Assembly: GCF_964204645.1 (NCBI RefSeq)
Contig: NC_134030.1
Coordinates: 1,347,355 to 1,411,354 of the forward strand
Direction: 5' to 3'
DNA length: 64,000 nucleotides
From: Tubulanus polymorphus
Taxonomy: Eukaryota > Animalia > Nemertea
The number at the start of each line of letters is the position of its first letter. The stretch's first letter is position 1. A program made the position numbers and the translations under genes. Positions 2,212 to 54,202 of this stretch are shown here, piece by piece. The notes under the pieces were generated by a model, which had not been told where the DNA came from, ran no database searches, and saw only the letters and a program-made list of their open reading frames with translations.

Positions 2212-2274
2212 ATGCCAAAAGCCACTAAGAAAACCCGGGGCGCGGGGCCCTCAACATCTAGCCCCTATAATAAA
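2212..2274 (+). CDS. Copy 1 coding exon 1 (MPKATKKTRGAGPSTSSPYNK)
   Basis: ttctag|ATG ... AAA|gtaagt. Confidence 0.8.
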
Positions 2275-3450
2275 GTAAGTACAAATTCACTGCTTCCATG
2301 CTTATTTATTCATCCCATACTTAGTATTTTGTACCCCTGGGTCCAGTTTCACAAAAAGGATTAACGCCTTAATCGATTTAAGATAAACTGAATTAATGAA
2401 GAAATTAAATCGATTTAAGAGTTAAACCTGTTTGTGAAACTAGGCCCTGAATTGCATCTAGAATGAAAAAAAAGAAAAAAAAATATTGAATATAACGTTG
2501 GTGAAATATTTCTGGATCTTTCTGGATTTCTGCTCAATGCATCGTTTAGTAAAATATCGATATTCTCTAAAAGTAAAGATATAAGAATAAAAATATTGTA
2601 TTGAATCGTGATTAGTTACTGTATGCGCTGCTAGTTGTTGCCCAACCCATAGCCTCATTTCTCTCCATTCTAAATTTGCATTGTTTAACATTGTCTGGTC
2701 GCTATGGAAACTATTTATTTAAGTTTCTTTGTTGTATCCATGGCAACAGTAACGTTTAGGTAGTGGCACCAATTATGGGTCCCAACGTTCCCATGGCGAT
2801 ACATGAGAACATTTATCCTATTTTTGACCTTCATGACGTAAGATGGTAGTGAGTCGATGACGTCATTTTCGTCTCACCACTAATGAAAAAAAAAATGAAA
2901 TGAAAAAAAAGGAAAAAATCGTTAGAATTACGTTTATGAAATTTTTCTGGATCGGCTAAATGTATTGTTCCATTAAATATCGACATTCTCTAAAATTATA
3001 GGCATCAATATCAAAATGATGATACAGCAGACTCCGCTTAACTCTGTTCTATTTGGACCATTAATTAACCGAATACCAACTTTTTAAAATTTTAGGATTT
3101 TAACTTTAAGGATCAGAAAATGTGTATGCAATTTCAACCGGGTACCGAGTAGGGTGGCCGAGTCTACTGTAGTCTGCTGCCCCCTCGAATCCATTACCTT
3201 ATTATCTCTCAATTTGCATTGTTTGACCTCGTCTGGTTGCTATGGAAACTATTTAGTTATATCAGGAACGGTTTTTTCGAGGTAACCAGTGGCAACATTT
3301 AACAGGCGTGTCCGTCCTAGAGATAAACTGTCTGATTTCACAGCCACATCCGTCCTGGAGATAAACTGTTAGATAAACTCTGATTTCGCGTCTGTCCTAT
3401 TTCTTGTCATTGTATGAATATGTTTTCTCTTTTATAGGGTACAGCGCAGC

Positions 3451-3487
<37 letters not shown>

Positions 3488-6400
3488 GCAACAACAACAA
3501 CAAAAATTTGATATTTCTATGTCCGGAATAGACGTAAGTTATCGTAAACGCCTGTTTGAAGTCATCATTCTTGAGCTTGAAACCGAAATTTATATTATAG
3601 AATATTAAACCCTGCTTCTGCTACTGACAGGTAATGTCCGTCATACATTACTGCATCGTCAAATCTATACCAGGGTGCACCCAGGCAGATCGTTCGCATC
3701 ATCACATGCAAAGGGCTGATTATTTTGGAACCCAGTTTTTATCAGCTGGAACATTCTGCACATTCGACCATATTGATTGATAGCCCGTTATAGACGAGTG
3801 GAGAAAAACTGAAAAACCAGTTCGGAAAAACTTCGATTGATTTCACTCACATTTACAGAAATTTGGTCCGACCCCAAAACCATTTACTTACACTATACAA
3901 ATCAGATCAGGTTTTTAACATTGTCTTTGATTGTATTTTCAGTTTTTACCGACAACGCCGCCCAGTGGTGTTTCGACGCCGGTAAGTGATAACTATTTTC
4001 TAATAAATCACGCTTATTTCAATTTGTAATTTGAAAATAGAGGGTAGTAGCTGTTATGTATAAATTATGCTAATTAGGAATAAATTCAAATTCGATTAAG
4101 TCTCATCATCGTAGAAGTCATATATTAATGATGCTATCTCTAAAGTTGTCATTTAAATTAAGTGTTATATTTACTACTTCATTTGCTTCATGACCCAAAA
4201 ACCTCTACTATATAGCTACTGGTTTTGTTCTAATCTTGGAGAATTTGCTGCAAAATTTACTTATCATTTGTTAAACAGTTTTTATTGAAAACCTGAATCA
4301 GTGATACATGCATTCATGAATATCCATCTAATATTTTGTTTTATTTTATCTTTACAGGATTTATCACCGATACAGCACGTGGACGTAAGAGATTAAACAT
4401 TGATCTTGAATTTTAAGTTCAAACTAATTTATTTTTTATCTCACTCGGGACTATAGTTATTGCGTTCACTTTGCGTCCAGTTGTCTCGGGTAGTTTTTGA
4501 TTTATCGTGTTGATAATTGGTTTATATACTCAAACTCAAAATATCGGCGCAATTGGAATTAAGATGGCGCACTTGTATGTCCATTTTTTTCCCCGGCAAA
4601 ATTAGCACTTTAGCAGATTTTAAGGATCAATTCTGTTGTTATATTACATTGAAATCAGAGTTTAATATATATCGGTATAGAGCAGATTTTTGCTCTAGTT
4701 ATAAATAAAGTTATAAATAATCTCATGACATGTTCTGTATATGTGTAGTGAGTTTCAATGTCTTTGGTTCCTTTTAAACCAGGGGGAGTTAAATTTGAAA
4801 ATGTCAGATCGTCGAGCATTTCAGACCGCATCCAAAGTGGGTCCCTGCACCCCTAGTTATACCGTTAATATTTTAATAATACATTAATATTTTTATTTGA
4901 TAGAATATATTGATATACCATACATTGATATCGGTCTTGTAATTGGATCAACAACCATGAGATCAAAACACAGCAAATATGAACCTGCTGTGAATCAATA
5001 GATTTGTGATAAATGTAATGAAATTGTTATTTTTCATATTGACTTTTTGAGTTAAGGGTCTGTTGTATAAGAGTCTTTGGTCTCGCGTGTCAATGTATGA
5101 TATCAATCTGTTGTATTTCCTCGTTCCAATGTTTAAAAGGTGTTCGTCACCTTATATTAATAAACTACTTTAACCGTTAGATGGCGCCATAAGTGTGATA
5201 TTTGATTTATGGGATACCCGCAAAACCAGCTATTCCACCAGATGGCGCAACGAGTAGTAGGTCGTTCGTTGTCAAAATTAGTTCATTTTCGATGAACTTT
5301 GAACTGGTTTGAAGAAGAAATACTTTCATTCTTCTACTCTGATATCGATTTAGTTTTCATTAATAATTGATTCATTTAAGAGAACAATTCATTCAGATTT
5401 AATTGAAATGTACAAGAAAATCGAACGCAGACGACCAACTATTTACTAGCGACACCTGGTGGATCCTCGCCTGCCATAAGTGGAATCCTCGATTGCCACA
5501 GTAAGACTGCGGGTATCCCATTGTTTGGCGTGTGAAGTAAAGTAAAGTTAGAAAACGGATGTTTAACTTTGTTGTGAAACGAAAGCGTTTTGGAGATTTT
5601 TAAACCAATCAAATCAATATTTTGATATTACGCTTGAAACCCTTCTCACTCATATTCTACTTACTAAGTATATATTCTTGTTTCTGTGGAAATCATGGTG
5701 AGTGGCGCCATCTATACAGTGGAGTTAGCTTTATAAATCGAGCTTGCTTCGACAAGTGGCTCCATCTATTCCCTAATACTGAAGCGAGGTAACCAGCAGC
5801 GCCCTCATATACAGGAAATGAACGCCTATCAAGTTTAACAATGCACGGTGTATTGACCACAGCGACCGGTGATAATTATATCAATGTTGATTAGCTATTG
5901 CCATAGACAGGTCCGTAGCGTTTGACTGGACCAGAACGGGGCCCCCTAACCAAAACAAATTTTGAAAACGTGCCCAGATAAATTGCCTCTGGGAGATTGA
6001 TTTAACGAGGTTTTGATTAAATGAACAAATTTTAATATTTGTAAGTTTAACATTTCTGTTTTTAATTTTTCTTTGCGAGGAACTGAATTTTCGAACCCCC
6101 CCGAACCGCCTCAAGCTATGTTCCTGATATAGTGCTAGCTATACCTGAATACTTTTCTCTTATTGAAATTGTCTAAAAAACCAGCACCTTGAACTAATGA
6201 ACGTCATAATGAAAATGTTTAAAAATTCAACCGTTAATGAATTTGACTAATGTATTTTTTTTATTTTCATTTCTAGCGTCAGTTTGCCTCAGAGGCAAGG
6301 TCGCCGTCGCTTAATGTAAGTATCAGTGACGCCCTCAATCTCACATGCCTCACTTCCCTCCTAATGTAACCATTTTTATGAAATTCCTCAAGAAAATATA

Positions 6401-9400
6401 TACTAGTAATCTTAGAATACACGTTTTTGTACCCAGACCCCTTCATTCTACTGAACTACCGTGTAATAAGTGCCTGTTGTGTTCATTTTCTGTTGCATTG
6501 ATTTATATATTATTTCTATTTACAGTTGTCAAACAACAGCAGCAGCAGCAACAGCAGCAGCAGCGCACCCCTCCCGCCGGAGACGCCTCCCGACTTGCAA
6601 GCAAGAAGTAAGTTCAGTCTTCAAATACAATTTCAACGCATTCAATTTTTTGTATGGCGTTAAAACGGTTAAAGTTGTGACTAGTTTTCATAACTCCGTG
6701 ACGTCATATTTCCATCGAGTACCGGACCCTTTCCTATGTTTTTTGCCAATTTGGATTGAATGATCGCCAGCGGTTTTTCTATACGACCCGGCTCTGCTGT
6801 ATTGCATTTAGCCATCCTTTTTCTTGGCGTTTTTTATAAGAAGGTGTTTGATTTTGTCTCTAAGGGATTTAGGAATTTAAGAGACACTTGTACTTTCTAT
6901 GCAGTGAGTTTGTTCTGTTTTTGTTCCCTCGTGAATTTTATTTTTGTTTGAATCAAATCAAATCAGTGCATCTTTCTTGAATTGCGTGTATGTTATAATA
7001 TTATGTAAGTTATAACGTTAAAATATCTGTTATATTTAAACCGAATATTTAATTGTTGTATTTTGAATGCGATAATGCCGCTCCCTGCTAAAGTCCAGCG
7101 TCGTCATCGTGAGGGATGCGGTCATCTGTTCGGGCCCTGATTACGTTCTGTGTTCATCCTGTTGGGCTACATCGGGCGTTATATGAGTTAATCCTTCCTC
7201 GACTTGCGGATTGTGGTCGGAAGATCTATGGGTTCGGGCCGATAAGTCCCGGAAACAGAAAGTACAGTTTCTGCCGATGTGCCCATTGATGTCTCTATTT
7301 CAGAACATCACAGCGGTCGCCGGCTGTACAAGCACGGTCGGCTTCCCAACTCCTTTCTCTGAGGAGGATCGCTGGTTCTCTAGTAACGGTCAGTCACCAG
7401 TCAATCAACGGTTCAGCTGGTTCAGTTTCCCAGGTATCGGCGCGGGACAGTCGGGATACCTGCACAGGAACTCAGGTCCGGTCCGGGCTACTCCGAGCAC
7501 CGGTCCGGTCCAGGCCTCACTGGGTAATGAACATCTGGTCCGGTCCGGGCGGCTTCGAGCACCGGTCCGGTCCAGGCATCACCAGATACTGAACATCCTG
7601 TCCAGTCAGCTCCGTGCACCGGTCCGGTCCAGGCATCACCGGGTACTGAACATCTGGTCCGGTAGCTTCGAGAACTGGTCCGGTCCAGGCATCACCGGAT
7701 ACTGAACATCCTGTCCGGTCAGCTCCGTGCACCGGTCCGGTCCAGGCATCACCGGATACTGAACATCTGGTCCGGTCAGCTTTGAGAACCGGTCCAGGCA
7801 TCACTGGGTACTGAACATCTGGTCCGGTAGCTTCGAGAACTGGTCCGGTCCAGGCATCACTGGGTACTGAACATCTGGTCCGGTAGCTTCGAGAACTGGC
7901 CTGGTCCAGGCATCACCGGGTACTGAACATCTGGTCCGGTCAGCTCTGTGCACCGGTCCGGTCCAGGCATCACCAGTTACTGGTCCGGTCCGGGCAGCTT
8001 TGAGCACCAGTCCATTCCAGGCATCACTGAGTACTGAACATCCAGTCTGGTCCGGTCCAGGCAACACCGGGTACTGATCATCCAGTCCGGTCCGGTCCAG
8101 GCATCACTGGGTACTGAACATCTGCTCCGGTAGCTTCGAGAACTGGTCCGGTCCAGGCATCACCGGGTACTGAACATCTGGTCCGGTAGCTTCGAGAACT
8201 GGTCCGGTCCAGGCATCACCGGGTACTGAACATCTGGTCCGGTAGCTTCGAGAACTGGTCCGGTCCAGGCATCACCGGGTACTGAACATCTGGTCCGGTA
8301 GCTTCGAGAACTGGTCCGGTCCAGGCATCACTGAGTACTGAACATCCAGTCTGGTCCGGTCCAGGCATCACCGGGTACTGATCATCCAGTCCGGTCCGGT
8401 CCAGGCATCACTGGGACTGAACATCCAGTCTGGTCCAGTCCAGGCATCACCGGGTACTGATCATCCAGTCCGGTCCGGTCCAGGCATCACCGGGTACTGA
8501 ACATCCAGTCTGGTCCGGTCCAGGCATCACCGGGTACTGAACATCCAGTCTGGTCCGGTCCAGGCATCACCAGTTACTGAACATCCAGTCCGGTCCGGTC
8601 CAGGCATCACCGGGTTCTGATCATCCAGTCCGGTCCGGTCCAGGCATCACCGGGTACTGAACATCCAGTCCGGTCCGGTCCAGGCATCACTGGGTACTGA
8701 TAATCCAGTCCGGTCCGGTCCAGGCATCACTGGGTACTGAACATCCAGTCTGGTCCGGTCCAGGCATCACCGGGTACTGAACATCCAGTCTGGTCCGGTC
8801 CAGGCATCACTGGGTACTGAACATCCGGTCCGGTCCGGTCCGGTCCAGGCATCACCGGGTACTGAACATCCAGTCCGGTCCAGTCCAGGCATCACCGGGT
8901 ACTGAACAGGGTTCGTCGCGGTGCTTGAAAAGCTTGAAATGGCTTGAATTTGAAAAATACTACTCAAGCGCTTGAAAACAGCTTGAAAATAGATCGAAAG
9001 CTTGAAATAATTATTTTTGACTTGAAATAAAAAGTTATGGCTTGAAATGCTTGATTATCACAAATTTTCTTCTTCACGAATTTTTTTCGATGAAATCGCA
9101 GACAGAATATGTTCTTGAGTTGTTTCTACGCGTGCGTCATGTTTTAGGCATCAATAAAGAAATTAATTGAATTGTATTGAATCGCTATGAGGCTCTTGTG
9201 GTGAAACTCTACGGTGTCTGGAGACATGAACATACGGGGAAATTTCAGTCATGCATGTTATCGAGCATTGATGTAAAATGGCATTGAAATCCCACACCAG
9301 GAGTGAGAGCCATGTTGAAGGCACAGCGACCTAGTCAAAGTCATTGAACATTACAAATTTCGTATTAGGCCATACAAAAATCAAGGTCTGTTTGCCGTCA

Positions 9401-12400
9401 TCCGACCGACCCGACTTCAAAGGTACCCAGTGGAAACTTTTTTCTTGGATTCATTGAAATAAATTGTATTTTTGATACAAATGGCCGACCCACTGCCGAT
9501 GTATGAGCTATGTATGTTTGAAGTTAAGTGTGCATCATGTGAAAACATGCCTCGACTATTTACTTGAAGTTTTCCAGGAAACTGGCAGTGTTCCAATAAG
9601 CTGCCATTCATTCTAAAGCTGGTAATGTTATAGCGTGCATATATTCAATCTACTGTTTCATTTTGAACGCAGATTTCGGATGTTGTTTCCGCTAAAAGTG
9701 GTGATGATAAATTTGTTGTTTTTTTTTGCCCCAAAATTTTGCAAAAAAAATGATGCTACCTTCCTACTGACTTATCCCAAAAATTTTAGTAGGTGTAACG
9801 GCAAAACAGACAATTAATTTGGGATGGCCAAATATCCAAATCTTGATTGATATGAATATTTAAGCTAGGAAATGCTGAAAATCATTGTGATGAACAGGTT
9901 TCATCTCTAACAGAATCGTATCAACTCGGAGGTTCCACTGGAATCAAAATTTTACCTCTTTTTTAACATTTTTATACGAACCTGTTCAAAATAGGCAAAT
10001 TGGCTGCGACTAACGAAAATTGCTTCCAACGTGCCTTAAAAAATAGCTTGAAAATGGTATAAATCTAGCTTGAAATGGCTTGAATTTCACCTGAGCTTGA
10101 GACAATGAACCCTGCTGAACATCTGGTCCGGTCAGCTTCCAGCACCGGTCCGGTCCAGGCATCACCGGTTACTGAACATCCGGTCCGGTCAGCTTCCAGC
10201 ACCGGTCCGGTCCAGGCATCACCGGTTACTGGTCCGGTCCGGGCAGCTTTGAGCACCGGTCCGGTCCAGGCATCACTGAGTACTGAACATCCAGTCCGGT
10301 CCGGTCAGCTCCGAGCACCGGTCCAGGCATCACCAGGTACTGAACATCTGGTCTGGTCCGGGCGGCCTGGCATCAATGTTTCGAATTTAAAACATAGTTA
10401 TCATGGCTCTAGGTTTGGTAGAGGGCGCTCTTCTACCAGATGCAGGAGCGAGGTCACCTTCACGGAGATCGAGATCGAGGGATTATGATTGATTCTGTAG
10501 GAACCATCATCATTCATCAGTTCAGGTCGAGGGACCGCTTAGGAAGTTCACGTCTTTCACGTCGAGGGACCGTTTAGGAAGTTCACATCTTTCACGTCGA
10601 GGGACCGTTTAGGAAGTTCACGTCTTTGACGTCGAGGGACCGTTTAGGAAGTTCACGTCTTTCACGTCGAGGGACCATTTAGGAAGTTCACGTCTTTCAC
10701 GTCGAGGGACCGTTAAGGAAGTCGTCACAATAATCAGGATTTCCGCGATTTCGAAAGTCAGATTTTAAACTTGTTATTGTCATTGTAAGCTACCGCAGTT
10801 ACAGGTAAGCCTATTCTTGATTGCCCGAGACAGGCGTGCAGATATTGTTCCCGACTTAAGTTTTTGGTTGATTTTCTTGTGACTTGTTTGTTTTAGGGGT
10901 GAGATGGATGAGCCTTATTGTTTTTTGACATATATAGGTCATCCAAGATGGCCGCCACAGCCATTACAATGTGTAAAATAGCCATTTTGAAGCTTGTGAC
11001 AACTCTACAATCTACAGTTTCAGACCAATTTGCCAATTACTTATTCTGTGGTTTCATAATGGTAGGAGAATGAGCCTTATTGTTTTTGACATATATAGGT
11101 CATCCAAGATGGCCGCCACAGCCATTTCAATGTGTGAAATAGCCATTTTGAAGCTTGTGACAACTCTACAATCTACAGTTTCAGACCAATTTACCAATTA
11201 CTTATTCTGTGGTTTCATAATGGTAAGAGGATGAGCCTTATTGTTTTTGACATATATAGGTCATCCAAGATGGCCGCCACAGCCATTTCAATGTGTGAAA
11301 TAGCCATTTTGAAGCTTGTTACCGCTCTACGGACTTAAGTTTTAAGCTTAAGACTTAAGATGGCCACCACAGTTATATCAATGTCTTAAATCTTATCCGA
11401 TTTGGAGCTTGTTACTGCTCTAAGATGTAGAGGTTTAGAGGTTTATAATTTCATTCATACTTGTACTGTGGTTTATTTATGGTGGTCAGAGGATGAGACC
11501 TATTACAATTTGCATTCTCTACTTGACTCACTGGTCAAGGGTTAATATCTAGTTTGATAAATGTGATAAGCATGTCGGTGAATCACCCCCCCCCCCGGAC
11601 TCTGATCTCAATGTCTGATGTCAATCGTCAGCAGTTTCAATGGAATGGGCTCGATTAGGTGTGGAACAAGTGGAATCCTCGATTGCCACAGTCGAACCTA
11701 GAGTATTAAGAGCTCAATTAGGTTCTTCTTTGCGTCTCTTCTCCGGTTGGAGTGCTCCAGTTTCCACCGAATGGAGGAAGATTAGAGATGTGCAGATTCA
11801 AGTCCACCATGCGGACTCCGGCTCCGGCTCCGGCAGCTCAAGGTTCAGCCCGAACTCACACAATGCCATCTCAAGCATCCGTACTTTCTCAAGCGGCTAC
11901 TAATGCTGTTTGGAGAACAAGTGCACAGCTCCAACATTCTCGTGCCCCTTCTGGTCAGAATAATTCTAGTTCATATCGGGGAATGCTCCTAAAAGGAGCT
12001 CTTCCTCTCGGAGAAACTCAAAATGAATGCTCGGGGCCAGTGAGAGGTTGTCTATAACGAGCAGCCACCTACTGATCCGGCGTTCCCGGGTCGTATCACG
12101 GCGGCTACTGTCTTCAATTCTGAACACCTCCCGACATGCGCCCGAAAGCAGGTCACGAGACACTAATCTCGTCAGCTCTCAAAGATCTGGCCAAAAAGAG
12201 AGCAATAGAACCAGTACGGGACGAAGCCTCATCCGGCTGGTTTTCATGAATATTTATGCTCCTGAAGACCACAGGGCGTCGATGGACTGTCATTCCTCGA
12301 GCGGCACCTGGATATCCCGAGGCTTCCGATGACTAAAACAGGGAGGTAATTCAAGGTCTCCGCCGAGGTTAATGGGCGGCTTCATTGGACCTGAAAGATG

Positions 12401-26020: not shown

Positions 26021-26704
26021 ATGAATTGGTAGAAATTCTATTTTTAGGTGACAGGTCAAATAGATTAGAACAGTAATTTATGCAGAGGTTGAATTAATTT
26101 AATGTTTGATATACCAAAGAATGGTTTATTGTGAAGATTTAATTAAAATCTTAAATAAAGAGTTGTTCAATTTCATAAATGTTTTGTTTTCGATGAAGTT
26201 TTTTCATTTTCTGGATTTGAGGAATTTGACTTTAAACACATCGGTGGATTCAGCACAGTTCTGTGGACACAGTTTTTGGACCGAGACACAGCTCAAGACC
26301 CAGTTACAAGTTCAACTGGACTCCATCCCAAAAAACCCTGGGCCCTTCAAACCTTTAAGTAAGATGCTCACTTACAGATTCATAAAATTGACCCTTATTA
26401 TCTTGTCATCTGCAGCACCATCTCAGAGGCTTAAACCAAGAATTTCTTGTAATGTTCAACAAATGTGAATTACATTAAGTAATTTTTGAGATCGACTTAC
26501 ACTAGTATTGAGTTTTTTCTAAATCACAGTCTACTTATTTTATATTCATCCACGATTTCATAGCTCTTTAACTATTCAACCCTTTCCCTGATGGGCCCTG
26601 GCCCCAATTGCTGAACCCAGTTCTCCAAGTCTAACTTCTGGGTTTAATGGTTTATCAGAGAATTAATGGATTAATTGGAAATAATCTAACAATCAATAAA
26701 GTTG

Positions 26705-36988: not shown

Positions 36989-37060
36989 TTCACTGAACCA
37001 GAATAAGACTGACTGATATATTTTCAAATGATTTAATATTTTTACTTGTTTTTCTAGAAG

Positions 37061-38301
37061 ATGCCAAAAGCTGTAAAAAAAACCCGGGCGTGGGGCCCTC
37101 AACATCTAGCCCCTATAATAAAGTAAGTACAAATTTACTGCTTCCATGCTTATTTATTCATCCCATACTTAGTATTTTGTACCCCTGGGTCCAGTTTCAC
37201 AAAAAGGATAAACGCCTTAATCGATTTAAGATAAACTGAATTAATGAAGAAATTAAATCGATTTAAGAGTTAAACCTGTTTGTGAAACTAGGCCCTGAAT
37301 TGCATCTAGAATGAAAAAAAAGAAAAAAAAATATTGAAAATAACGTTGGTGAAATATTTCTGGATCTTTCTGGATTTCTGCTCAATGCATCGTTTAGTAA
37401 AATATCGATATTCTCTAAAAGTAAAGATATAAGAATAAAAATATTGTATTGAATCGTGATTAGTTACTGTATGCGCTGCTAGTTGTTGCCCAACCCATAG
37501 CCTCATTTCTCTCCATTCTAAATTTGCATTGTTTAACATTGTCTGGTCGCTATGGAAACTATTTATTTAAGTTTCTTTGTGGTATCCATGGCAACAGTAA
37601 CGTTTAGGTAGTGGCACCAATTATGGGTCCCAACGTTCCCATGGCGATACATGAGAACATTTATCCTATTTTTGACCTTCATGACGTAAGATGGTAGTGA
37701 GTCGATGACGTCATTTTCGTCTCACCACTAATGAAAAAAAAAATGAAATGAAAAAAAAGGAAAAAATCGTTAGAATTACGTTTATGAAATTTTTCTGGAT
37801 CGGCTAAATGTATTGTTCCATTAAATATCGACATTCTCTAAAATTATAGGCATCAATATCAAAATGATGATACAGCAGACTCCGCTTAACTCTGTTCTAT
37901 TTGGACCATTAATTAACCGAATACCAACTTTTTAAAATTTTAGGATTTTTACTTTAAGGATCAGAAAATGTGTATGCAATTTCAACCGGGTACCGAGTAG
38001 GGTGGCCGAGTCTACTGTAGTCTGCTGCCCCCTCGAATCCATTACCTTATTATCTCTCAATTTGCATTGTTTGACCTCGTCTGGTTGCTATGGAAACTAT
38101 TTAGTTATATCAGGATCAACGGTTTTTTCGAGGTAACCAGTGGCAACAGTTAACAGACGTGTCCATCCTAGAGATAAACTGTCTGATTTCACAGCCACAT
38201 CCGTCCTGGAGATAAACTGTTAGATAAACTCTGATTTCGCGTCCGTCCTATTTCTTGTCATTGTATGAATATGTTTTCTCTTTTATAGGGTACAGCACAG
38301 C

Positions 38302-38335
<34 letters not shown>

Positions 38336-41300: not shown

Positions 41301-41348
41301 TTTTCTGTTGCATTGATTTATATATTATTTCTATTTACAGTTGTCAAA

Positions 41349-41383
<35 letters not shown>

Positions 41384-44300
41384 CACCCCTCCCGCCGGAG
41401 ACGCCTCCCGACTTGCAAGCAAGAAGTAAGTTCAGTCTTCAAATACAATTTCAATGCATTCAATTTTGTGTATGGCATTAAAACGGTTAAAGTTGTGACT
41501 AGTTTTCATAACTCCGTGACGTCATATTTCCATCGAGTACCGGACCCTTTCCTATGTTTTTTGCCAATTTGGATTGAATGATCGCCAGCGGTTTTTCTAT
41601 ACGACCCGGCTCTGCTGTATTGCATTTAGCCATCCTTTTTCTTGGCGTTTTTTATAAGGTGTTTGATTTTGTCTCTAAGGGATTTAGGAATTTAAGAGAC
41701 ACTTGTACTCTCTATACAGTGAGTTTGTTCTGTTTTTGTTCCCTCGTGAATTTTATTTTTGTTTGGTATAATTTGATTTATCATAATCAAATCAAATCAG
41801 TGCATATTTCTTGAATTGCGTGTAAGTTATAATGTTATCAAATATCTGTTATATTTAAACCGAATATTTAATTGTTGTATTTTGAATGCGATAATGCCGC
41901 TCCCTGCTAAAGTCGAGCGTCGTCATCGTGAGGGATGCGGTCATCTGTTCGGGCCCTGATTACGTTCTGTGTTCATCCTGTTGGGCTACATCGGGCGTTA
42001 TATGAGTTAATCCTTCCTCGACTTGCGGATTGTGGTCGGAAGATCTATGGGTTCGGGCCGATAAGTCCCGGAAACAGAAAGTACAGTTTCTGCCTATGTG
42101 CCCATTGATGTCTCTATTTCAGAACATCACAGCGGTCGCCGGCTGTACAAGCACGGTCGGCTTCCCAACTCCTTTCTCTGAGGAGGATCGCTGGTTCTCT
42201 AGTAACGGTCAGTCACCAGTCAATCAACAGTTCAGCTGGTTCAGTTTCCCAGGTATCGGCGCGCGACAGTCGGGATACCTGCACAGGAACTCAGGTCCGG
42301 TCCGGGCTACTCCGAGCACCAGTCCGGTCCAGGCCTCACTGGGTAATGAACATCTGGTCCGGTCCGGGCGGCTTCGAGCACCGGTCCGGTCCAGGCATCA
42401 CCAGATACTGAACATCCTGTCCAGTCAGCTCCGTGCACCGGTCCGGTCCAGGCATCACCGGGTACTGAACATCTGGTCCGGTAGCTTCGAGAACTGGTCC
42501 GGTCCAGGCATCACCGGGTACTGAACATCTGGTCCGGTAGCTTCGAGAACTGGTCCGGTCCAGGCATCACCGGGTACTGAACATCTGGTCAGGTAGCTTC
42601 GAGAACTGGTCCGGTCCAGGCATCACCGGGTACTGAACATCTGGTCCGGTAGCTTCGAGAACTGGTCCGGTCCAGGCATCACCGGGTACTGAACATCTGG
42701 TCCGGTAGCTTCGAGAACTGGTCCGGTCCAGGCATCACTGAGTACTGAACATCCAGTCTGGTCCGGTCCAGGCATCACCGGGTACTGATCATCCAGTCCG
42801 GTCCGGTCCAGGCATCACTGGGACTGAACATCCAGTCTGGTCCGGTCCAGGCATCACCGGGTACTGAACATCCAGTCTGGTCCGGTCCAGGCATCACCAG
42901 TTACTGAACATCCAGTCCGGTCCGGTCCAGGCATCACTGGGTACTGAACATCCAGTCCGGTCCGGTCCAGGCATCACCGGGTTCTGATCATCCAGTCCGG
43001 TCCGGTCCAGGCATCACCGGGTACTGAACATCCAGTCCGGTCCGGTCCAGGCATCACTGGGTACTGAACATCCAGTCCGGTCCGGTCCAGGCATCACTGG
43101 GTACTGAACATCCAGTCTGGTCCGGTCCAGGCATCACCGGGTACTGAACATCCAGTCTGGTCCGGTCCAGGCATCACTGGGTACTGAACATCCGGTCCGG
43201 TCCGGTCCAGGCATCACCGGGTACTGAACATCCACTCTGGTCCGGTCCAGGCATCACCGGGTACTGAACAGGGTTCGTCGCGGTGCTTGAAAAGCTTGAA
43301 ATGGCTTGAATTTGAAAAATACTACTCAAGCGCTTGAAAACAGCTTGAAAATAGATCGAAAGCTTGAAATAATTATTTTTGACTTGAAATAAAAAGTTAT
43401 GGCTTGAAATGCTTGATTATCACAAATTTTCTTCTTCGCGAATTTTTTTCGATGAAATCGCAGACAGAATAATATGTTCTTGAGTTGTTTCTACGCGTGC
43501 GTCATGTTTTAGGCATCAATAAAGAAATTAATTGAATTGTATTGAATCGCTATGAGACTCTTGTGGTGAAACTCTACGGTGTCTGGAGACATGAACATAC
43601 GGGGAAATTTCAGTCATGCATGTTATCGAGCATTGATGTAAAATGGCATTGAAATCCCACACCAGGAGTGAGAGCCATGTTGAAGGCACCGCGACCTAGT
43701 CAAAGTCATTGAACATTACAAATTTCGTATTAGGCCATCCAAAAATCAAGGTCTGTTTGCCGTCATCCGACCGACCCGACTTCAAAGGTACCCAGTGGAA
43801 ACTTTTTTCTTGGATTCATTGAAATAAATTGTATTTTTGATACAAATGGCCGACCCACTGCCGATGTATGAGCTATGTATGTTTGAAGTTAAGTGTGCAT
43901 CATGTGAAAACATGCCTCGACTATTTACTTGAAGTTTTCCAGGAAACTGGCAGTGTTCCAATAAGCTGCCATTCATTCTAAAGCTGGTAATGTTATAGCG
44001 TGCATATATTCAATCTACTGTTTCATTTTGAACGCAGATTTCGGATGTTGTTTCCGCTAAAAGTGGTGATGATAAATTTGTTGTTTTTTTTGCCCCAAAA
44101 TTTTGCAAAAAAAAAATGATGCTACCTTCCTACTGACTTATCCCAAAAATAGTAGGTGTGACGGCAAAACAGACAATTAATTTGGGATGGCCAAATATCC
44201 AAATCTTGATTGATATGAATATTTAAGCTAGGAAATGCTGAAAATCATTGTGATGAACAGGTTTCATCTCTAACAGAATCGTATCAACTCGGAGGTTCCA

Positions 44301-47300
44301 CTGGAATCAAAATTTTACCTCTTTTTTAACATTTTTATACGAACCTGTTCAAAATAGGCAAATTGGCTGCGACTAACGAAAATTGCTTCCAACGTGCCTT
44401 AAAAAATAGCTTGAAAATGGTATAAATCTAGCTTGAAATGGCTTGAATTTCACCTGAGCTTGAGACAATGAACCCTGCTGAACATCTGGTCCGGTCAGCT
44501 TCCAGCACCGGTCCGGTCCAGGCATCACCGGTTACTGAACATCCGGTCCGGTCAGCTTCCAGCACCGGTCCAGGCATCACCAGGTACTGAACATCTGGTC
44601 TGGTCCGGGCGGCCTGGCATCAATGTTTCGAATTTAAAACATAGTTATCATGGTTCTAGGTTTGGTAGAGGGCGCTCTTCTACCAGATGCAGGAGCGAGG
44701 TCACCTTCACGGAGATCGAGATCGAGGGATTATGATTGATTCTGTAGGAACCATCATCATTCATCAGTTTAGGTCGAGGGACCGTTTAGGAAGTTCACGT
44801 CTTTCACGTCGAGGGACCGTTTAGGAAGTTCACATCTTTCACGTCGAGGGACCGTTTAGGAAGTTCACGTCTTTCACGTCGAGGGACCGTTTAGGAAGTT
44901 CACGTCTTTCACGTCGAGGGACCGTTTAGGAAGTTCACGTCTTTCACGTCGAGGGACCGTTTAGGAAGTTCACGTCTTTCACGTCGAGGGACCGTTTAGG
45001 AAGTTCAAGTCTTTCACGTCGAGGGACCGTTAAGGAAGTCGTCACAATAATCAGGATTTCCGCGATTTCGAAAGTCAGATTTTAAACTTGTTATTGTCAT
45101 TGTAAGCTACCGCAGTTACAGGTAAGCCTATTCTTGATTGCCCGAGACAGGCGTGCAGATATTGTTCCCGACTTAAGTTTTTGGTTGATTTTCTTGTGAC
45201 TTGTTTGTTTTAGGGGTGAGATGGATGAGCCTTATTGTTTTTTGACATATATAGGTCATCCAAGATGGCCGCCACAGCCATTTCAATGTGTGAAATAGCC
45301 ATTTTGAAGCTTGTGACAACTCTACAATCTACAGTTTCAGACCAATTTACCAATTACTTATTCTGTGGTTTCATAATGGTAAGAGGATGAGCCTTATTGT
45401 TTTTGACATATATAAGTCATCCAAGATGGCCGCCACAGCCATTTCAATGTGTGAAATAGCCATTTTGAAGCTTGTTACCGCTCTACGGACTTAAGTTTTA
45501 AGCTTAAGACTTAAGATGGCCACCACAGTTATATCAATGTCTTAAATCTTATCCGATTTGGAGCTTGTTACTGCTCTAAGATGTAGAGGTTTAGAGGTTT
45601 ATAATTTCATTCATACTTGTACTGTGGTTTATTTATGGTGGTCAGAGGATGAGACCTATTACAATTTGCATTCTCTACTTGACTCACTGGTCAAGGGTTA
45701 ATATCTAGTTTGATAAATGTGGAGCATGTCGGTGAATCATCCCCCCCCCTCCCCCGGACTCTGATCTCAATGTCTGATGTCAATCGTCAGCAGTTTCAAT
45801 GGAATAGGCTCGATTAGGTGTGGAACAAGTGGAATCCTCGATTGCCACAGTCGAACCTAGAGTATTAAGAGCTCAATTAGGTTCTTCTTTGCGTCTCTTT
45901 TCCAGTTGGAGTGCTCCAGTTTCCACCGAATGGAGGAAGATTCGAGATGTGCAGATTCAAGTCCACCATGCGGACTCCGGCTCCGGCTCCGGCAGCTCAA
46001 GGTTCAGCCCGAACTCACACAATGCCATCTCAAGCATCCGTACTTTCTCAAGCGGCTACTAATGCTGTTTGGAGAACAAGTGCACAGCTCCAACATTCTC
46101 GTGCCCCTTCTGGTCAGAATAATTCTAGTTCATATCGGGGAATGCTCCTAAAAGGAGCTCTTCCTCTTGGAGAAACTCAAAATGAATGCTCGGGGCCAGT
46201 GAGAGGTTGTCTATAACGAGCAGCCACCTACTGATCCGGCGTTCCCGGGTCGTATCACGGCGGCTACTGTCTTCAATTCTGAACACCTCCCGACATGCGC
46301 CCGAAAGCAGGTCACGAGACACTAATCTCGTTAGCTCTCAAAGATCTGGCCAAAAAGAGAGCAATAGAACCAGTACGGGACGAAGCCACATCCGGCTGGT
46401 TTTCATGAATATTTATGCTCCTGAAGACCACAGGGCGTCGATGGACTGTCATTCCTCGAGTGGCACCTGGATATCCCGAGGCTTCCGATGACTAAAACAG
46501 GGAGGTAATTCAAGGTCTCCGTCGAGGTTAATGGGCGGCTTCATTGGACCTGAAAGATGTCAGGTTCCTATTCACCCGAAATCTCATCAATTTCACAGAA
46601 TGAAGTGGAAACGCTGCCAGTTCCAGTTCAGGTCTCTTCCAGTCGGCCTCAGTACAGCCCACGCCCTGGGTATTTACCAGCTTGGGTCAAGTCCAGAAGG
46701 TACACTACACTCCAGGGCTGGGTTTCATAGATATGGAAGAAAAATAATTCCAGGGAACATTTTGAAATTTGTCAGTTATAACCATGGTTTCTCATTGTTA
46801 GTATGGTGGTTGAGGATTTATCCCTTTGGATAACTTTGATACTCAGTCTATGAAACCGGGTCCTGGAGTATTTGTCTGTTGGTTTACCTCGACGACTGGT
46901 TACTAGTACCAAACTAGACTATAGAATGTCAGGAGGCGGTGACCGCTGTCGACCGCTGTCGTAGACTTAGTTCACCAGTTCCGCGTAAACTAAGTAAAAT
47001 CTCACTTGATGCCGTCCCAACAGTTCACATCTCCGGATCAGCACGGTCTTTCCGTCCATGGCTCGAGTAGCCAAACTTCAAGAAGCGTAGTTACCACAAA
47101 CGAGAGGACAGCTAGTTATCGGTGACGCCTGTGGCTAAATGCAATACCGCACTGCCAGGGGTCGTATCTCTGGCTATCTACACATTCAGAGAATATTAAC
47201 TAAAACCATAGGAAAGGGTCAAGCACTACTCCGAAAAAAACTAATTTTATTTCCAAAAAATTATGATATTATATGGATTGCATGCTGTGTGGAAGAAGTT

Positions 47301-50300
47301 TTCAAAATTATTTAGGAGCTTATTATAATTTGAATGCATGAATTGAGAGCAATTTGAAATGTGTTGATATCCGAAAGTGTCTCCATTGACTTCACTCATT
47401 CACCTGATGAAGCTTCTATACATTAGTACCCAAAGCTTGTGTGTCAAATAAACTAGTTACACGTCCTATAAAGTACTACTTGTCTCGTTATATATTCTAA
47501 ACCCCAGTTAACAATTCCAGTAAGTCAGGTTTAGGGAATAGATATTTAAACCTTGAGATGATACCGATGTGATACAATTCCAGTAACTCAGGTTTAGGGA
47601 ATAGATATTTAACTCTTTGCATGCAACTTTGTTAAATTTTCAGATCTCAGAATTCTCTGATTTGTTCTTAACTACTTTCAGTACATGATAATAAAGCAAT
47701 TATGAGGGCTTTATACTAACAGGGACATAGTAAAACTATATATTTTCTGTTTCAGAACAACCTATTCTATCTAAAAATCTATACTTTTCAAAAATTTTGC
47801 TGTCTGGGGTAAGATGAGGGACCCCAGAAGGCCCCACCCAGGGTGTGGTTGTACTAAATAAGCCTGTTTTTTTTACAGTAATTAGCCAAGGAAAAAAAGA
47901 GATCAGAGAGAAACTGATTATAATTCTCCATTTTATCCAAGCTAGGGCCGTTGTTGATCACTGGGAAAAGTTTTGGGGTCCTTGGGTCATTATGATGGTC
48001 AATATCTCAAGGTCAACGAAAGGTCAAAAAATCAAATTTTAAAAAATTATTTTTTAATTTCAGTCAATATGTCTTCTCTAGTATCCTCTATTGCTGAGTA
48101 TCCTCTCATGAGCTGAAATAAAGTATTCCTCGAGGTGTCTCCGAATATTAGGGGGTCTTTGTGACCCCCTAAATTCCCAGAGGGGTCACCCTAAATTCCC
48201 AGAGGGGTCAAAATGACAGAAAATCTACAAAAAGTCAGTGTAATTTGAATGACATACTTCACTGATGCGACTACGCCGGCCAAAAATAAACACTGATAAG
48301 AGTTAGAATGATACAGTGTATGTAGTGCTACTGTGAAAATCTATCTATGTCAGGTATGCGCCGTGTCTAAACGCTCTGTCATAGGCCTATGTGCTGTATA
48401 CACAGCTGGTGCTTGTATGGATATAGGAACAGCTTCAGTGTGTTGCCAAGGCCTCCGCGTGATAACAGACATAACATGAAGTACAGAGCTCGATGTATAT
48501 TCCATCTATAGGGCCATAGCAACACTACCCGTTATATGATGTAACGTCACGCACATTTCAAAGGTTTGACGACCGTTACTTCCGGTCACCCCCAGCATGC
48601 ATAGAGTTAAACCTTGAGATGATACCGATGTGATACAATTCCAGTAAGTCAGGTTTAGGGAATAGATATTTAAACCTTGAGATGATACCGATGTTATACA
48701 ATTCCAGTAAGTCAGGTTTAGGGAATAGATATTTAAACCTTGAGATGATACCGATGTTATACAATTCCAGTAAGTCAGGTTTAGGGAATAGATATTTAAA
48801 CCTTGAGATGAAACCGATGTGATACAATTCCAGTAAGTCAGGTTTAGGGAATAGATATTTAAACCTTCAGATGATACCGATGTGATACAATTCCAGTAAG
48901 TCAGGTTTAGGGAATAGATATTTAAACCTTCAGATGATACCGATGTAATACAATTCCAGTAAGTCAGGTTTAGGGAATAGATATTTAAACCTTGAGATGA
49001 TACCGATGTTATACAATTCCAGTAAGTCAGGTTTAGGGAATAGATATTTAAACCTTCAGATGATACCGATGTTATACAATTCCAGTAAGTCAGGTTTAGG
49101 GAATAGATATTTAAACCTTCAGATGATACCGATGTGATACAATTCCAGTAAGTCAGGTTTAGGGAATAGATATTTAAACCTTCAGATGATACCGATGTGA
49201 TACAATTCCAGTAAGTCAGGTTTAGGGAATAGATATTTAAACCTTGAGATGATACCGATGTAATACAATTCCAGTAAGTCAGGTTTAGGGAATAGATATT
49301 TAAACCTTGAGATGATACCGATGTTATACAATTCCAGTAAGTCAGGTTTAGGGAATAGATATTTAAACCTTGAGATTAAACCGATGTAATACAATTCCAG
49401 TAAGTCAGGTTTAGGGAATAGATATTTAAACCTTCAGATGATACCGATGTAATACAATTCCAGTAAGTCAGGTTTAGGGAATAGATATTTAAACCTTGAG
49501 ATGATACCGATGTTATACAATTCCAGTAAGTCAGGTTTAGGGAATAGATATTTAAACCTTCAGATGAAACCGATGTGATACAATCCCAGTAAGTCAGGTT
49601 TAGGGAATAGATATTTAAACCTTGAGATGAAACCGATGTGATACAATTCCAGTAAGTCAGGTTTAGGGAATAGATATTTAAACCTTCAGATGAAACCGAT
49701 GTGATACAATCCCAGTAAGTCAGGTTTAGGGAATAGATATTTAAACCTTGAGATGAAACCGATGTGATACAATTCCAGTAAGTCAGGTTTAGGGAATAGA
49801 TATTTAAACCTTCAGATGATACCGATGTGATACAATTCCAGTAAGTCAGGTTTAGGGAATAGATATTTAAACCTTCAGATGATACCGATGTAATACAATT
49901 CCAGTAAGTCAGGTTTAGGGAATAGATATTTAAACCTTCAGATGATACCGATGTTATACAATTCCAGTAAGTCAGGTTTAGGGAATAGATATTTAAACCT
50001 TGAGATGATACCGATGTAATACAATTCCAGTAAGTCAGGTTTAGGGAATAGATATTTAAACCTTCAGATGAAACCGATGTGATACAATTCCAGTAAGTCA
50101 GGTTTAGGGAATAGATATTTAAACCTTCAGATGATACCGATGAATTTAGCAATTTTGAATGAATTAAACCAATATGAGATTTCGATCCTAAGAATATTGG
50201 AAGCTTGTGTTTAACGTTACTAAATATTAATATTATATAAAGCTAGAAGGACACGAGCGTATCCATTTTTCGCCCGATCGCGACGATTAAATTCGCCGGT

Positions 50301-53300
50301 GAATTTATACGCCCGATACGAGCGGGTACCGATCTATCTATAAATCGGCCATCACGGTGATTTCGTCGCCCGCCGACATTAAACATGTTCGATATTTACG
50401 CCGGTGTTCGGGTCACTTGTTAATTCGCCCGTCTTGTCGGCAAGCTTAAAAAGATTTAGAAAAAACTAGAAATTCTCATTCCTGAATGAACTGGATTCAT
50501 CTGGGTTCAGTTTCATGAGACACAGTTCAAACTGCTCTTGAATTTGAGTTTGTAATTAATGTATGTGATTATAATGAATTGTATTTTTGTTTTACAGCTT
50601 TGGCATTTCGGTTAAGTCGTGCGTTCCGGCGGGAGGAGTTCGTCAGAATATTTCTACCGGAGTGTAAGTAGTTTAACTATTTTCATACAATATCATTTAG
50701 TATGACGTGTGTTACTGATTCAGGCACGGATCCAGGAATGTTTCCAAGACGGGGTTCATAAAAATGCTGACTAAAATCTCTAATAATAGCCGGGGCCTAT
50801 ACGGCATATTTTTTGGCCAAACATAAGGCCTTTTTTTAATAGCATGGTTTGGTTGCTCCCAAAATTTGAAGAAACATAAAATAAAAAAGAATTAGAAAAA
50901 AAATTTTTTATTCCTGTCTGTGAAACAAATTCAGTGAAAAACCGAGCAAAAAAGATTTTTCACCTCGGCCGAATGAGAATCCTGGATTGAACGATGAAAC
51001 AATTGAAAAACGCGAGGTTCTTTTTTGATCGCAGTGTGCAGAATTCAAACTTTCCAAGAATCATTTGTTCGGACATATGTATATTGCCCTATTGACAGTT
51101 CCCTCTTCCTTCTAAAAGTGATTTTATCTCACTGAGGGAATTTTAAAAAAATTTTCTCTGAAATGATATGGTAGCGTTTTTTTTTTTGCTTTAAAAATTT
51201 TTTGGTAGCCGATCAGCGGGGTCACGACCCCTGAAACCCTCCCTGGATCCGCGCCTATGATATCTCCTCAAAATCTAATAAAAACTTTCAATGAATTAAT
51301 GCTGTAATGACGATATGTAGCCATCTGTCTATTTGAATGCATTTGCAAAAAGACAAAAAGAAATAGTAGCAGAATTTTGGCTAAAAGTTTAGAATACCCA
51401 AATTCAACATTGCTTGCAGCAGACGGAATTTCCGCCATTTTGGTTAACAGGGGATTCCCCCCTCCGGTACTTCCCATGATCAATAGTGTCTATGACGCGT
51501 TGCGTACGGAATGCCATGGAATTCCCTCACATGATTTATGATAATAATGTTTACTTGCATTCTGATTGGTTAAAATCGCGTGTAGTTTGAACGTAGGCAA
51601 TGTTTACATTTGTAACGTCACCGGCGAGTCGCTGACATTAACGTAGTCATTGAGTTAACATTATCTTGCACTGAATGGTGATATCAATCGCATTCATTTT
51701 ATAAATATTTTGACTATAAATTTGTTTTTATATATCAACTGCGAGTAACAGTGTTACGCTATTGAGTCTTAAGAGACAGCCTTTATGGACCTTATTGGTT
51801 GTTATAACTCACAAGCTGACTGAGTTAGCATTCTGGATCCGTCAGATTAGTTACTTCTAGAAAATATGTTAGTCACATTTTCTGACTATATTCTGGAAAA
51901 CAGTGAAAGCTTGTATCCACCCTAGATTAGAACCAATCAGAATAGAACCAATCAGAATACACTATTTTACAGAAAATATATTTATGACAATTGCGTAAGG
52001 TTTTAGTAAAATAGTGTTTTTTCTCGAGTAGTTGCCGAAGAAGCATAAAAATTTGATTCAATTTCATTCAGATTTAAACAAACAAATCGAATTTCATTTC
52101 ATTCAGCGCAAACTTCAAATCTAATTAAAATTTTGTTCAGTATGAATAAGTTGCAAATCATTGAGAGGAAAAAATAATTAATTGTGTTACTTAAAAAAAT
52201 CACAATTGTACTGTGTTTATCAAAACAGGAGACCACAGGACCTTTGGTCCTCTAGTATTCTTTTCCTAGTTATTCCAAAAACACTAAAACAGTCCAATCA
52301 GCGATCGCTGCCAGACCAACACGATTACATTGAAATCAAACTTAAGTAACATCAGGCGCCCCCTGTTGGAATAATATTCATAGCCGTAGCATCGAAACCA
52401 TTCGACTTGTTGTTTAATGTATTTCTCTCTATTTTTATTTTACAGTGATGAACATTTTACAAGACTGTCCGTTTGGGGACTTGGTGGGGGAATTCAAAAG
52501 AAACTTGGTTCCCGATAGGATACCACCACCGGTTAATCCTATGTCGCCCGCTGCTGCCCCTCCCCCACGTCCATTAAATTCGCCTCAGCAGCGGCCTGTC
52601 AGACAGCCGCCCCCGGCCGCCACTCGTTCGTCAGACAGAGTCCGGGGACGGCTGTTTGAAGGAGATCTGACGGAGGTAAGAATCTTTATTTGTTTTCATA
52701 TTTTATTCAGGATATCAGTTGAAGTTCAGCAAATAAATTACCAGACCTGTAAACAGAAGAGTAGTCATAAATTTCCATTTGCGGGTAAAACCCCATAGTC
52801 GAAAACCTTCGGTTATTGATCTATATCTGCTTAAGACCAATGGTTGTACACACGAGTGCGAAAACTTATCGCTCAAACTTTGATTGTATCCATGGTAACG
52901 CGTACAGTATACTATGCGTGACTTACCGTTTCCTATCACTGGAATACAATACTGTTTTTGACCATGAGCGCCATCTGCGGCGGTCATAACGGACTGACTG
53001 GTGATTGGCTGAAATGCTCGTCTACCGTGGTGACGATTATTCGGTGTTACACGTGCAGCAGACACGTCTCTGAATATCTAACATTTGATTTTTGTAACTC
53101 ATCGGGAAAAATATGTTTATGAGTCGATTTTTTGTCGAAATTTTGTTCGGCAGAAAATTGGCTGCGTACGTCAAGAAGGCGGCTGATATTTGTATCGTGT
53201 GACCCCTCGTCCCGGTAATATGCCGACCCACGTACACCTGAGACCAGTTGCATAGTCAGAGCTTAGAATTAAGACCGTTCTAAGACCAACTTAGTTCTAT

Positions 53301-54202
53301 AGCCAATCTAATAACTTAAGACCAGTCTTTAGATTTAAGACCACTTTTGGACTTAAGTCTTGACCATGGAATCGGCCCCAGATGCTTATTCCGCTGTATT
53401 GGATGCTGACGTGCTCGTGTCTTCCAGCAATGTTGTTATTCACCAAAAATATCATGTTTTGTTCGAATAACACAATTCATCTGAGTCTGGGTTTAACGGA
53501 TGACACGTTCAAACAGAACTACGAAATCAATATCAGAAGTCCTTTTATATTGAAACGGTCCCAGAAGTCCCTGTTATAATGGGTACTTTTTCAAAAAAAG
53601 TAACGAGAACTCCGATGGCTTTCCGTATCGGTAAAAACTAACTATTTCTATGAGCGTCACTTGTAGATTTACCGAAACGCCACCTTGTGACACGATATCC
53701 TAACTACGTATAGGTGTTTTATTTGCTGAATCGCTGGTTTCTCATTCTCATTTTTTATACTTGTGTTTAATTTTATACTAAACAAATTTTTCACTTTTTC
53801 TCTTTACAGACACGACCACCGCCAAAAAAAACTAGAACAAAAAGGAAAAGAAAAGTTGCGGTCGTCGTGGCTCCGCAGGGAGGAGGAGCAAGAGTGGTCC
53901 CGGCGGATGGTGCGGCTGAAGAAGGTAATCGGGAGGAAGGGGAGGGGATAAATAGGAAGCGGCCGAGGAGGGATGGTGGTGGGGCTGGGGATGGTGCGGG
54001 TCCTGCTCCTCCTGCTCCTCCATCCGTATCTCGGGCGGTCACTCGTTCACTCGCCAAAAAGCTGGCGAGTGAACGAGTGGCCCGAGAGGTAGAGGTGGTG
54101 GCCCGACATACGGATGGAATGTGGGAGGAGCGGCTTCGTTCGGGGACAATTCCGGATTTGTTAACTGATTTAAAAAATATTCTTTCAGTGAAGGGATATT
54201 AG
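37061..54202 (+). CDS. Spliced gene copy 2, with an apparent 1-nt frameshift in exon 1
   Basis: Exons 37061-37122 (62 nt), 38289-38381, 38791-38829, 39200-39226, 41092-41130, 41341-41425, 50598-50663, 52446-52675, 53810-54202; all splice sites kept; exons 2-9 open in frame. Confidence 0.75.
41890..47140 (+). mobile_element. Decayed DIRS-type retrotransposon, copy 2
   Basis: Uninterrupted RT stretch LDLKD..QVPIHPKSHQFHRMKWKRCQFQFRSLPVGLSTA at 46535-46660; VYLDDWLL at ~46881. Confidence 0.75.
43269..44477. mobile_element. hAT5-like non-autonomous element, copy 2
   Basis: CAGGGTTC/GAACCCTG TIR, CTGAA TSD. Confidence 0.85.
47510..50142. repeat. 63-bp minisatellite, ~26 units, interrupted by a transposon
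   Basis: Same unit as 15110-15485. Confidence 0.95.
47613..48606. mobile_element. piggyBac-like non-autonomous element, copy 2 only
   Basis: TTAA TSD at the TTAA of a 63-bp unit; TIR CTCTTTGCATGC / GCATGCATAGAG. Confidence 0.88.
50721..51259. mobile_element. MITE in intron 7, copy 2 only
   Basis: TIR AGGCACGGATCCAGG / CCTGGATCCGCGCCT; absent at ~16063. Confidence 0.75.

Follow-up and report, generated by a model that had tools for sequence, protein, structure and literature searches.

Mostly silent recoding confined to exons in a nemertean gene array interleaved with inverted gene pieces: a possible escape from antisense small RNAs

Introduction

Selfish genes are expected to escape RNA silencing by silent recoding; in the limited library of literature searched, we found no documented case of it in an endogenous animal gene family. 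The Dox family of Drosophila simulans, with its hairpin-RNA suppressors Nmy and Tmy, is amplified, lineage-restricted, satellite-embedded and accompanied by recurrent inverted copies, all of which holds for the locus described here; synonymous change or escape is not mentioned in that work (bioRxiv 10.1101/2021.08.05.454923; PMC10292708). Stellate/Su(Ste) and co-amplified X/Y genes likewise combine a tandem array with a homologous antisense source, and for the X/Y genes antisense read-through transcription was proposed as the trigger (PMC6486647; bioRxiv 10.1101/324368). Inverted duplication of the target genes, also seen here, is known from plant NBS-LRR genes and their miRNAs, where third-position diversity at target sites was tied to small-RNA diversity (PMC5026261). 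In the red/green opsins the introns of tandem copies are, as here, more alike than the exons (PMC3924837).

Results

The analysed window, a stretch of 64,000 nucleotides from Tubulanus polymorphus, contains two copies, A and B, of one gene.

2212..18037, + strand: copy A, whole gene; nine coding exons, 344 aa, open frame, all introns GT-AG
2212..2274, +: copy A exon 1; hypervariable segment 2223-2229
3438..3533, +: copy A exon 2
3943..3981, +: copy A exon 3; varies at 3948-3952 and 3963-3975
4358..4384, +: copy A exon 4; 17/18 C6 copies identical, no close antisense piece
6277..6315, +: copy A exon 5; patch 6292-6296
6526..6607, +: copy A exon 6
15943..16008, +: copy A exon 7; 3' segment 15984-16001, 5' segment 15944-15959
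16287..16516, +: copy A exon 8; patch 16407-16415, 5' end variable
17645..18037, +: copy A exon 9; includes the stop codon
32900..33120, +: upstream element; donor site near 33080, conserved, one per gene
37061..54202, +: copy B, whole gene
37061-37122, +: copy B exon 1; 1-nt deletion, frameshift
38289-38381, +: copy B exon 2
38791-38829, +: copy B exon 3
39200-39226, +: copy B exon 4
41092-41130, +: copy B exon 5
41341-41425, +: copy B exon 6
50598-50663, +: copy B exon 7
52446-52675, +: copy B exon 8
53810-54202, +: copy B exon 9

The product of copy A is low-complexity and basic, with no recognised domain in Pfam; Rfam gave no match, and neither a search of 1.84 billion proteins with exon 9 nor one of the ESM Atlas with exons 8 and 9 found an outside homologue. 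In copy B the deletion, near 37085, had escaped the original prediction; it is private to this copy and, unlike the patches, could be a sequence error. Both copies belong to a family whose close members, about 29 and near-identical, are spread over three contigs; older members exist as well. On contigs C6 and C3 28 close gene copies were counted, 18 C6 copies being genotyped at exons 4 and 7; of the older paralogs, on contig C8, the one sampled is ~11% divergent in its intron sequence and ~5% divergent over exon 9. Searches for the family were run exon by exon rather than with the joined spliced model, and alleles were typed family-wide from match tables of short degenerate patterns. This array of orphan genes is young-looking and evolves in concert; amplification and restriction to one lineage are shared with small-RNA-suppressed families of the Dox/hpRNA and Stellate/Su(Ste) type.

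The original prediction, that exons differ between A and B more than introns do, is borne out: 33 of 1031 exonic sites differ (3.2%) against 98 of 14231 non-exonic ones (0.69%), counted after masking of tandem repeats (Fisher p=2.4e-11). Intron 2 is near-identical (1/409), and the exonic changes gather where they had been described: 7/39 sites in exon 3, with four synonymous codons; 7/66 in exon 7, all inside 15986-16001; 7/230 in exon 8, five of them in 16407-16415; 3/39 in exon 5 (6292-6296); and 6/62 in exon 1, five in 2223-2229. Exons 2, 6 and 9 differ at one site each and exon 4 at none. No cluster of equal density was found in introns, where at most three substitutions come together, those of at least four being all exonic; of the 33 changes in exons, 26 lie no more than 5 nt from another, against a mean of 8.9 and a maximum of 23 in 20000 random draws. 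The synonymous excess is also real, pS being 5.7%, with 14.5 changes where the intron rate predicts 1.7 (p=5e-9); pN (2.4%) exceeds the intron rate too (p=1e-5) and stays below pS, and each patch contains at least one amino-acid change. Besides the deletion in copy B, a second feature had been missed: intron 7 differs in structure (278 vs 1782 nt), and the DNA surrounding exon 7 diverges by 3%, not 0.7%. Against this local rate the excess of exon 7 is still significant (p=1e-5).

Throughout the family, separate lineages recode identical segments with differing, mostly synonymous codons. The 18-nt 3' segment of exon 7 has ten alleles genome-wide, recoded independently; they follow one another step by step, unlike blocks imported whole, and 11 of the 13 steps are synonymous (counted by hand). 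In four C3 genes it is changed silently only, and one C3 copy compared with the others reaches in exon 7 a pS of 0.52-0.67 for flanking introns 3.7-6.9% divergent (p about 1e-7); exon 7 of copy A is the same as that of C3:1278k. The 5' segment is recoded in C3 genes only (seven changes in four copies) and unchanged in 17 of 18 C6 genes. Exon 1 is both the most variable exon and the richest in antisense pieces (36), and several copies carry in-frame insertions in exon 3. The divergent islands are just 5-18 nt wide, and the synonymous sites adjoining them are unchanged.

Between the genes lie cassettes made of inverted, promoter-less and scrambled gene pieces; inverted pieces in the window include:

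26703..26843, - strand: end of the upstream intron and an exon-1 variant; 9/62 exonic and 2/77 intronic mismatches to copy A
29143..29461, -: exon-9 piece, 94% identical to A, with uninterrupted matches of 96 and 80 nt
63215..63355, -: exon-1 piece, downstream of copy B

Such homologous, antisense-oriented non-coding copies are a further feature shared with Dox/hpRNA and Stellate/Su(Ste) type families. The cassettes retain exons, with 10-36 pieces for most of them (about 20 for exon 8, 36 for exon 9), and have nearly lost intron interiors (0/31 and 2/30 matches). The upstream element, 97-100% identical across 28 copies, is complete in no cassette; it is a likely promoter with a non-coding first exon. 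All related pieces examined keep intron flanks, which rules out an origin as processed pseudogenes, and they diverge from copy A by 10.0% in their exonic and by 4.4% in their intronic parts. For the 3' segment of exon 7 the cassette alleles are intermediate: they occupy inner nodes of the network and match none of the 28 C6/C3 genes.

Discussion

We give about an even chance to the reading that the mRNA sequence, and not the protein alone, is under selection to escape antisense small RNAs, short-tract conversion shuffling the variants; the process would resemble the Dox/hairpin-RNA or Stellate conflicts. Escape had been among the original proposals and is supported, if indirectly, by the inverted exon-rich cassettes and the intermediate alleles; at RNA level it stays a proposal. 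More specifically, an intron-bearing animal family might repeatedly recode its exons silently against cassette small RNAs, the cassettes being a record of past rounds; this is a tentative view, to which we allow somewhat less than an even chance.

In such a course of events, inverted duplications of gene pieces settle between the copies, keeping exons and losing intron interiors and promoter, as the cassettes show. Read-through in the direction of the array might then yield cassette antisense RNA or fold-backs, and from these siRNAs or piRNAs directed at the spliced mRNA. Gene copies mismatching such RNAs in short segments would be favoured, with protein constraint steering change to synonymous and conservative codons, as in the pattern observed. 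Variants may arise stepwise or by short-tract borrowing from older paralogs, and they are shuffled among copies, as the mosaics show; conversion and unequal exchange would hold the introns alike. Fresh captures would renew the cassettes, which would thus hold past alleles, as found for exon 7.

In favour of escape, the 5' segment of exon 7 is recoded only on C3, the one contig whose cassettes cover it, and C3 pieces bear 4/7 and 6/7 of its changes; exon 4, with no close antisense piece, is unchanged in 17 of 18 C6 genes, exon 1 being the opposite on both counts. Against it, long perfect antisense matches of 80-210 nt remain, the longest joining a cassette piece to exon 8 of copy B, and exons 6 and 9 have ample cassette coverage yet hardly vary among genes. 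Some gene sequences even equal an antisense allele: 7 of 23 exon-1 5' halves, about ten 3' halves, exon 6 (two C3 pieces 100% identical) and copy B exon 3. One exon-9 piece bears derived rather than ancestral changes, and the exon-7 network cannot be polarised with confidence, older C8 paralogs adjoining the copy B allele. Escape at few segments would pay only if few small RNAs dominate or if the effect is graded.

Conversion tracts might instead copy old exon variants from a library of cassettes or older paralogs, as do the pseudogene donors of chicken immunoglobulin or of antigenic-variation loci (VSG, vls type), synonymous changes riding along. Short-tract conversion among family members, as originally proposed, is indeed shown by fine mosaic haplotypes inside exons of 39-63 nt; the patch of copy B exon 7 is one base from the older paralog C8:16315k, with different flanks, copy B exon 3 is identical to two C3 cassette pieces, and the core of its exon 5 is common to a cassette piece. 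On this view the tracts keep to exons, which alone are still homologous or retained; a library would also be as rich in exons as the cassettes are. Exact matches to a donor are mixed, being present for exon 3 of copy B and for part of the exon-1 halves and absent for the segments of exons 7, 5 and 2. Against a library, the copy B exon-7 patch has no exact match outside gene copies, none of the 28 C6/C3 genes carries a cassette allele there, and the alleles are stepwise. The source of 5-6 synonymous changes in six codons is left unexplained, the sampled older paralog being so little diverged, as are the unchanged adjoining sites; mostly silent change, with pN below pS, offers little to select for protein diversification, and nothing marks the product as a surface molecule. 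We consider a donor library fairly unlikely as the main cause.

Old paralogs may also have been homogenised except around selected amino-acid differences, keeping the linked synonymous ones, as in the red/green opsins, whose introns are homogenised and exon 5 diverged (PMC3924837). The replacement present in every A/B patch, the raised pN and the higher local divergence around exon 7 fit such islands. But the silent-only exon-7 alleles of four C3 genes have no replacement at their centre, the islands are narrow, beside unchanged synonymous sites, non-coding pieces show the same excess of exon over intron change, and the exon-only inverted cassettes are not accounted for; this makes the explanation decidedly unlikely.

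Rewriting of exons from RNA or cDNA, or an exon-targeted mutator (e.g. error-prone break repair at small-RNA-bound loci) filtered by protein selection, seems to us very unlikely. Changes are confined to exons, whose outermost 4 nt are free of them, and the in-frame exon-3 insertions would also suit it. Nevertheless the cDNA/RNA route of the original prediction finds no support, every related piece examined keeping its intron flanks and the exon-by-exon searches showing no processed, intron-less donor or exon-junction tract; transitions and transversions are 15:18 in exons and 52:46 in introns, so alike in spectrum, and the hot segments are fixed, next to unchanged codons whose synonymous sites are free to vary. 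Local template switching is ruled out as well: one 9-mer apart, no copy of a patch core lies close by in either orientation. Lastly, an assembly or polishing artefact is extremely improbable, since the pair belongs to so many near-identical copies: unchanged in sequence, each patch allele is found again in several separate ones, spread over as many as three contigs and linked to the structural differences of their introns.

The locus would make escape directly testable, with its named segments, matched and mismatched alleles and intermediate series; the 5' segment of exon 7, cassette-covered on one contig only, offers an internal control. If synonymous sites are not neutral here, a dN/dS below 1 would hide strong positive selection, which calls for caution.

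Compared with the known systems, the opsins show a whole-exon island around selected amino acids, with neither silent-only patches nor antisense cassettes (PMC3924837). The suppressors of Dox are compact hairpin loci with demonstrated siRNAs and drive phenotypes (bioRxiv 10.1101/2021.08.05.454923; PMC10292708), whereas here the putative silencers are interspersed, multi-exon cassettes. Stellate and the X/Y systems involve pairs of sex chromosomes and whole-gene repeats (PMC6486647; bioRxiv 10.1101/324368); here the silencer-like pieces, which hold many alleles, are interleaved with the genes of a single array. In NBS-LRR genes the miRNAs follow the ordinary wobble diversity of old genes (PMC5026261), while in this family the synonymous divergence of the recoded segments is many-fold above the intron rate, between near-identical copies.

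Exon divergence between the two copies

Two units, each about 35 kb long and carrying one nine-exon gene, follow one another in tandem in the window:

2212-18037 (+): copy A, frame open throughout, 344 amino acids
37061-54202 (+): copy B, frame of exon 1 shifted by a 1-nt deletion

The original prediction held that exons of these copies diverge while introns do not, and all its exon and intron difference counts were reproduced. Exonic differences amount to 33/1031, versus 98/14231 outside exons (p=2.4e-11), and 26 of the 33 are clustered; synonymous (5.7%) and replacement (2.4%) divergence each exceed the intron rate. The sequence around exon 7 is older, with 3% divergence in the flanking intron and an unlike intron-7 structure, and exon 7 itself has six synonymous changes (p=1e-5 against the local intron rate of about 3%). 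The deletion of copy B, at 37085 in a G run and private to this copy, marks a recent pseudogene or an assembly error. Other structural features are:

2339-2447: palindrome in intron 1 (z -8), most likely a small element with inverted repeats
12430-14192: 1.76-kb insertion in copy A intron 6, 583-nt terminal inverted repeats (98.6%), missing in copy B
16063-16226: copy A intron 7, 160-nt replacement
50720-51260: copy B intron 7, insertions including a short inverted-end element

Among the copies on contig C6, intron-7 type and exon-7 allele show perfect linkage. Tandem arrays of a dozen kinds occur in each unit as well (periods 19, 47, 57/40, 35, 161, 63, 120, 24/42, 34, 264, 46, 260), unequal in length between units.

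A family of mosaic genes

Close gene copies in the genome (268 Mb, 77 contigs) number 18 on C6, 10 on C3 and one on C8. Contig C8 also carries older paralogs, and a remote subfamily, at 45–51% identity, is spread over C8, C9 and C11. Pfam, Rfam, a 1.84-billion-protein search with exon 9 and the ESM Atlas with exons 8 and 9 gave no homologue outside this family. Beside older paralogs, fragments of exons 9 and 8 form tandem runs (C8:15158-15172k, C8:15074-15076k).

The gene copies are mosaics: alleles of exon 7, exon 8 5' and exon 8 middle recombine among them, the two halves of exon 1 are shuffled, and exon 3 has 9 haplotypes in 15 C6 copies. Over the 29 copies, exons beyond the hot windows vary less than introns, diversity being 0.0007 over the final 96 nt of exon 8, 0.004 across most of exon 9, 0.02–0.03 in intron 8 and 0.06–0.08 in both exon-8 windows.

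Recoding recurs in the same windows, two of them in exon 7:

15984-16001: 3' window (18 nt, copy A coordinates), 10 alleles
15944-15959: 5' window (copy A coordinates)

Counted by hand from match tables of short pattern searches, the minimum network joining the 3' alleles requires 13 changes, 11 of them synonymous. In four C3 genes the 3' allele differs from the A-like one at silent sites only, and 16 nt of the 5' window contain 7 changes. The pS (synonymous divergence) of exon 7 between these genes and other copies is 0.52–0.67, with 4–7% divergence in flanking introns. Conversely, copy A and the gene at C3:1278k are identical in exon 7 despite 3.5% intron divergence. Since silent-only patches cannot be held by selection on the protein, some force must target the nucleotide sequence itself, or be its source.

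Two hairpins and a set of stems lie at the 3' end of copy A:

17850-17940 (+): coding exon 9, hairpin with a near-perfect stem of about 22 bp and an extension, pre-miRNA size, z -8.5, almost invariant among copies
18018-18090 (+): stop-codon hairpin, about 31 bp, z -8.7
to about 18520: nested long stems (z -11.7 for 18000-18620)

Every pair of the stop-codon hairpin is kept in 10 copies, one an older C8 paralog, and no compensatory change occurs among them.

Inverted cassettes between genes

Gene pieces sit between the genes, opposite to the array direction. In the window, an inverted exon-1 piece lies behind each gene copy, with one inverted exon-9 piece in addition; elsewhere cassettes extend over 10–20 kb. 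One sampled stretch of 3.2 kb contains two pieces each of exons 1 and 3 and one each of exons 2, 4 and 8, all keeping short intron flanks, so that they are genomic and a cDNA origin is ruled out.

Inverted pieces genome-wide (all lower bounds, searched exon by exon)
Exon 1: at least 36
Exon 2: about 10
Exon 3: about 10
Exon 7: at least 13
Exon 8: about 20
Exon 9: about 36

Of 31 matches to the interior of intron 8 none lay in a cassette, and the interior of intron 4 yielded two pieces. A conserved upstream element, found once per gene, was never complete in cassettes:

32900-33120 (+): conserved upstream element

Exon retention, single orientation and lack of promoter are what would be expected of an antisense source against spliced mRNA, were the cassettes transcribed. 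Inverted exon-8-like pieces also lie 6–8 kb downstream of remote-subfamily genes (C11:380-388k, C11:458-466k, C9:950-957k, C9:1580-1588k, C8:13953-13962k), so this layout may be old or recurrent.

Origin of the patches

We lean, with belief and doubt about evenly balanced, to selection of exon windows to mismatch antisense small RNAs. In the exon-7 3' window, three alleles at inner nodes of the network are found in pieces on C6 and C3 and in none of the 28 genes on these contigs. The 5' window, present in C3 cassettes and missing from those of C6, is recoded in C3 genes only and unchanged in 17/18 C6 genes; C3 pieces bear 4/7 and 6/7 of its changes. Exon 4, without close antisense piece, is likewise unchanged in 17/18 C6 genes. 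No gene is identical to a piece in the exon-2 window, the exon-5 window or entire exon 1. Several matches count against simple escape: one recent piece has the majority exon-8 allele and a 210-nt perfect run to copy B, the window's exon-9 piece retains perfect runs of 96 and 80 nt, two C3 pieces are identical to exon 6 and two to copy B exon 3, and exons 6 and 9 are nearly uniform among genes though covered by pieces.

That the pieces serve as a donor library seems rather unlikely to us. The short-tract conversion originally proposed does supply and shuffle some variants, but leaves unexplained the abundance of silent ones in narrow windows. No sequence other than gene copies matches the copy B exon-7 patch exactly; closest to it, at a distance of one base, are an older C8 paralog and the inverted piece of that paralog, in which the flanking codons differ. 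This suggests either that a conversion tract shorter than about 27 nt was involved or that an old allele was retained, and it allows more than one root for the exon-7 network. Opsin-type islands (PMC3924837) appear slightly less plausible still; they, the donor library and antisense-escape selection can act jointly. RNA-templated or targeted mutation we regard as improbable. Artefact is scarcely credible: the same patch alleles recur across several copies and are thus real, that of copy B exon 1 occurring without the deletion at C6:1735k.

Comparison with known systems

The novelty lies in a synonymous excess that greatly surpasses the intron rate among near-identical copies, alongside putative silencers storing intermediate alleles. 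There is a resemblance to the NBS-LRR genes of plants, for which miRNAs originate through inverted duplication and follow the diversity at third positions. Compared on genomic sequence alone, the locus is likened to, and not classed with, systems of the Dox or Stellate type: its mode of action would resemble that of Dox and its hairpin RNAs, of Stellate and Su(Ste), and of the co-amplified X/Y genes of Drosophila, with small RNAs, expression in the germline and drive all putative here.
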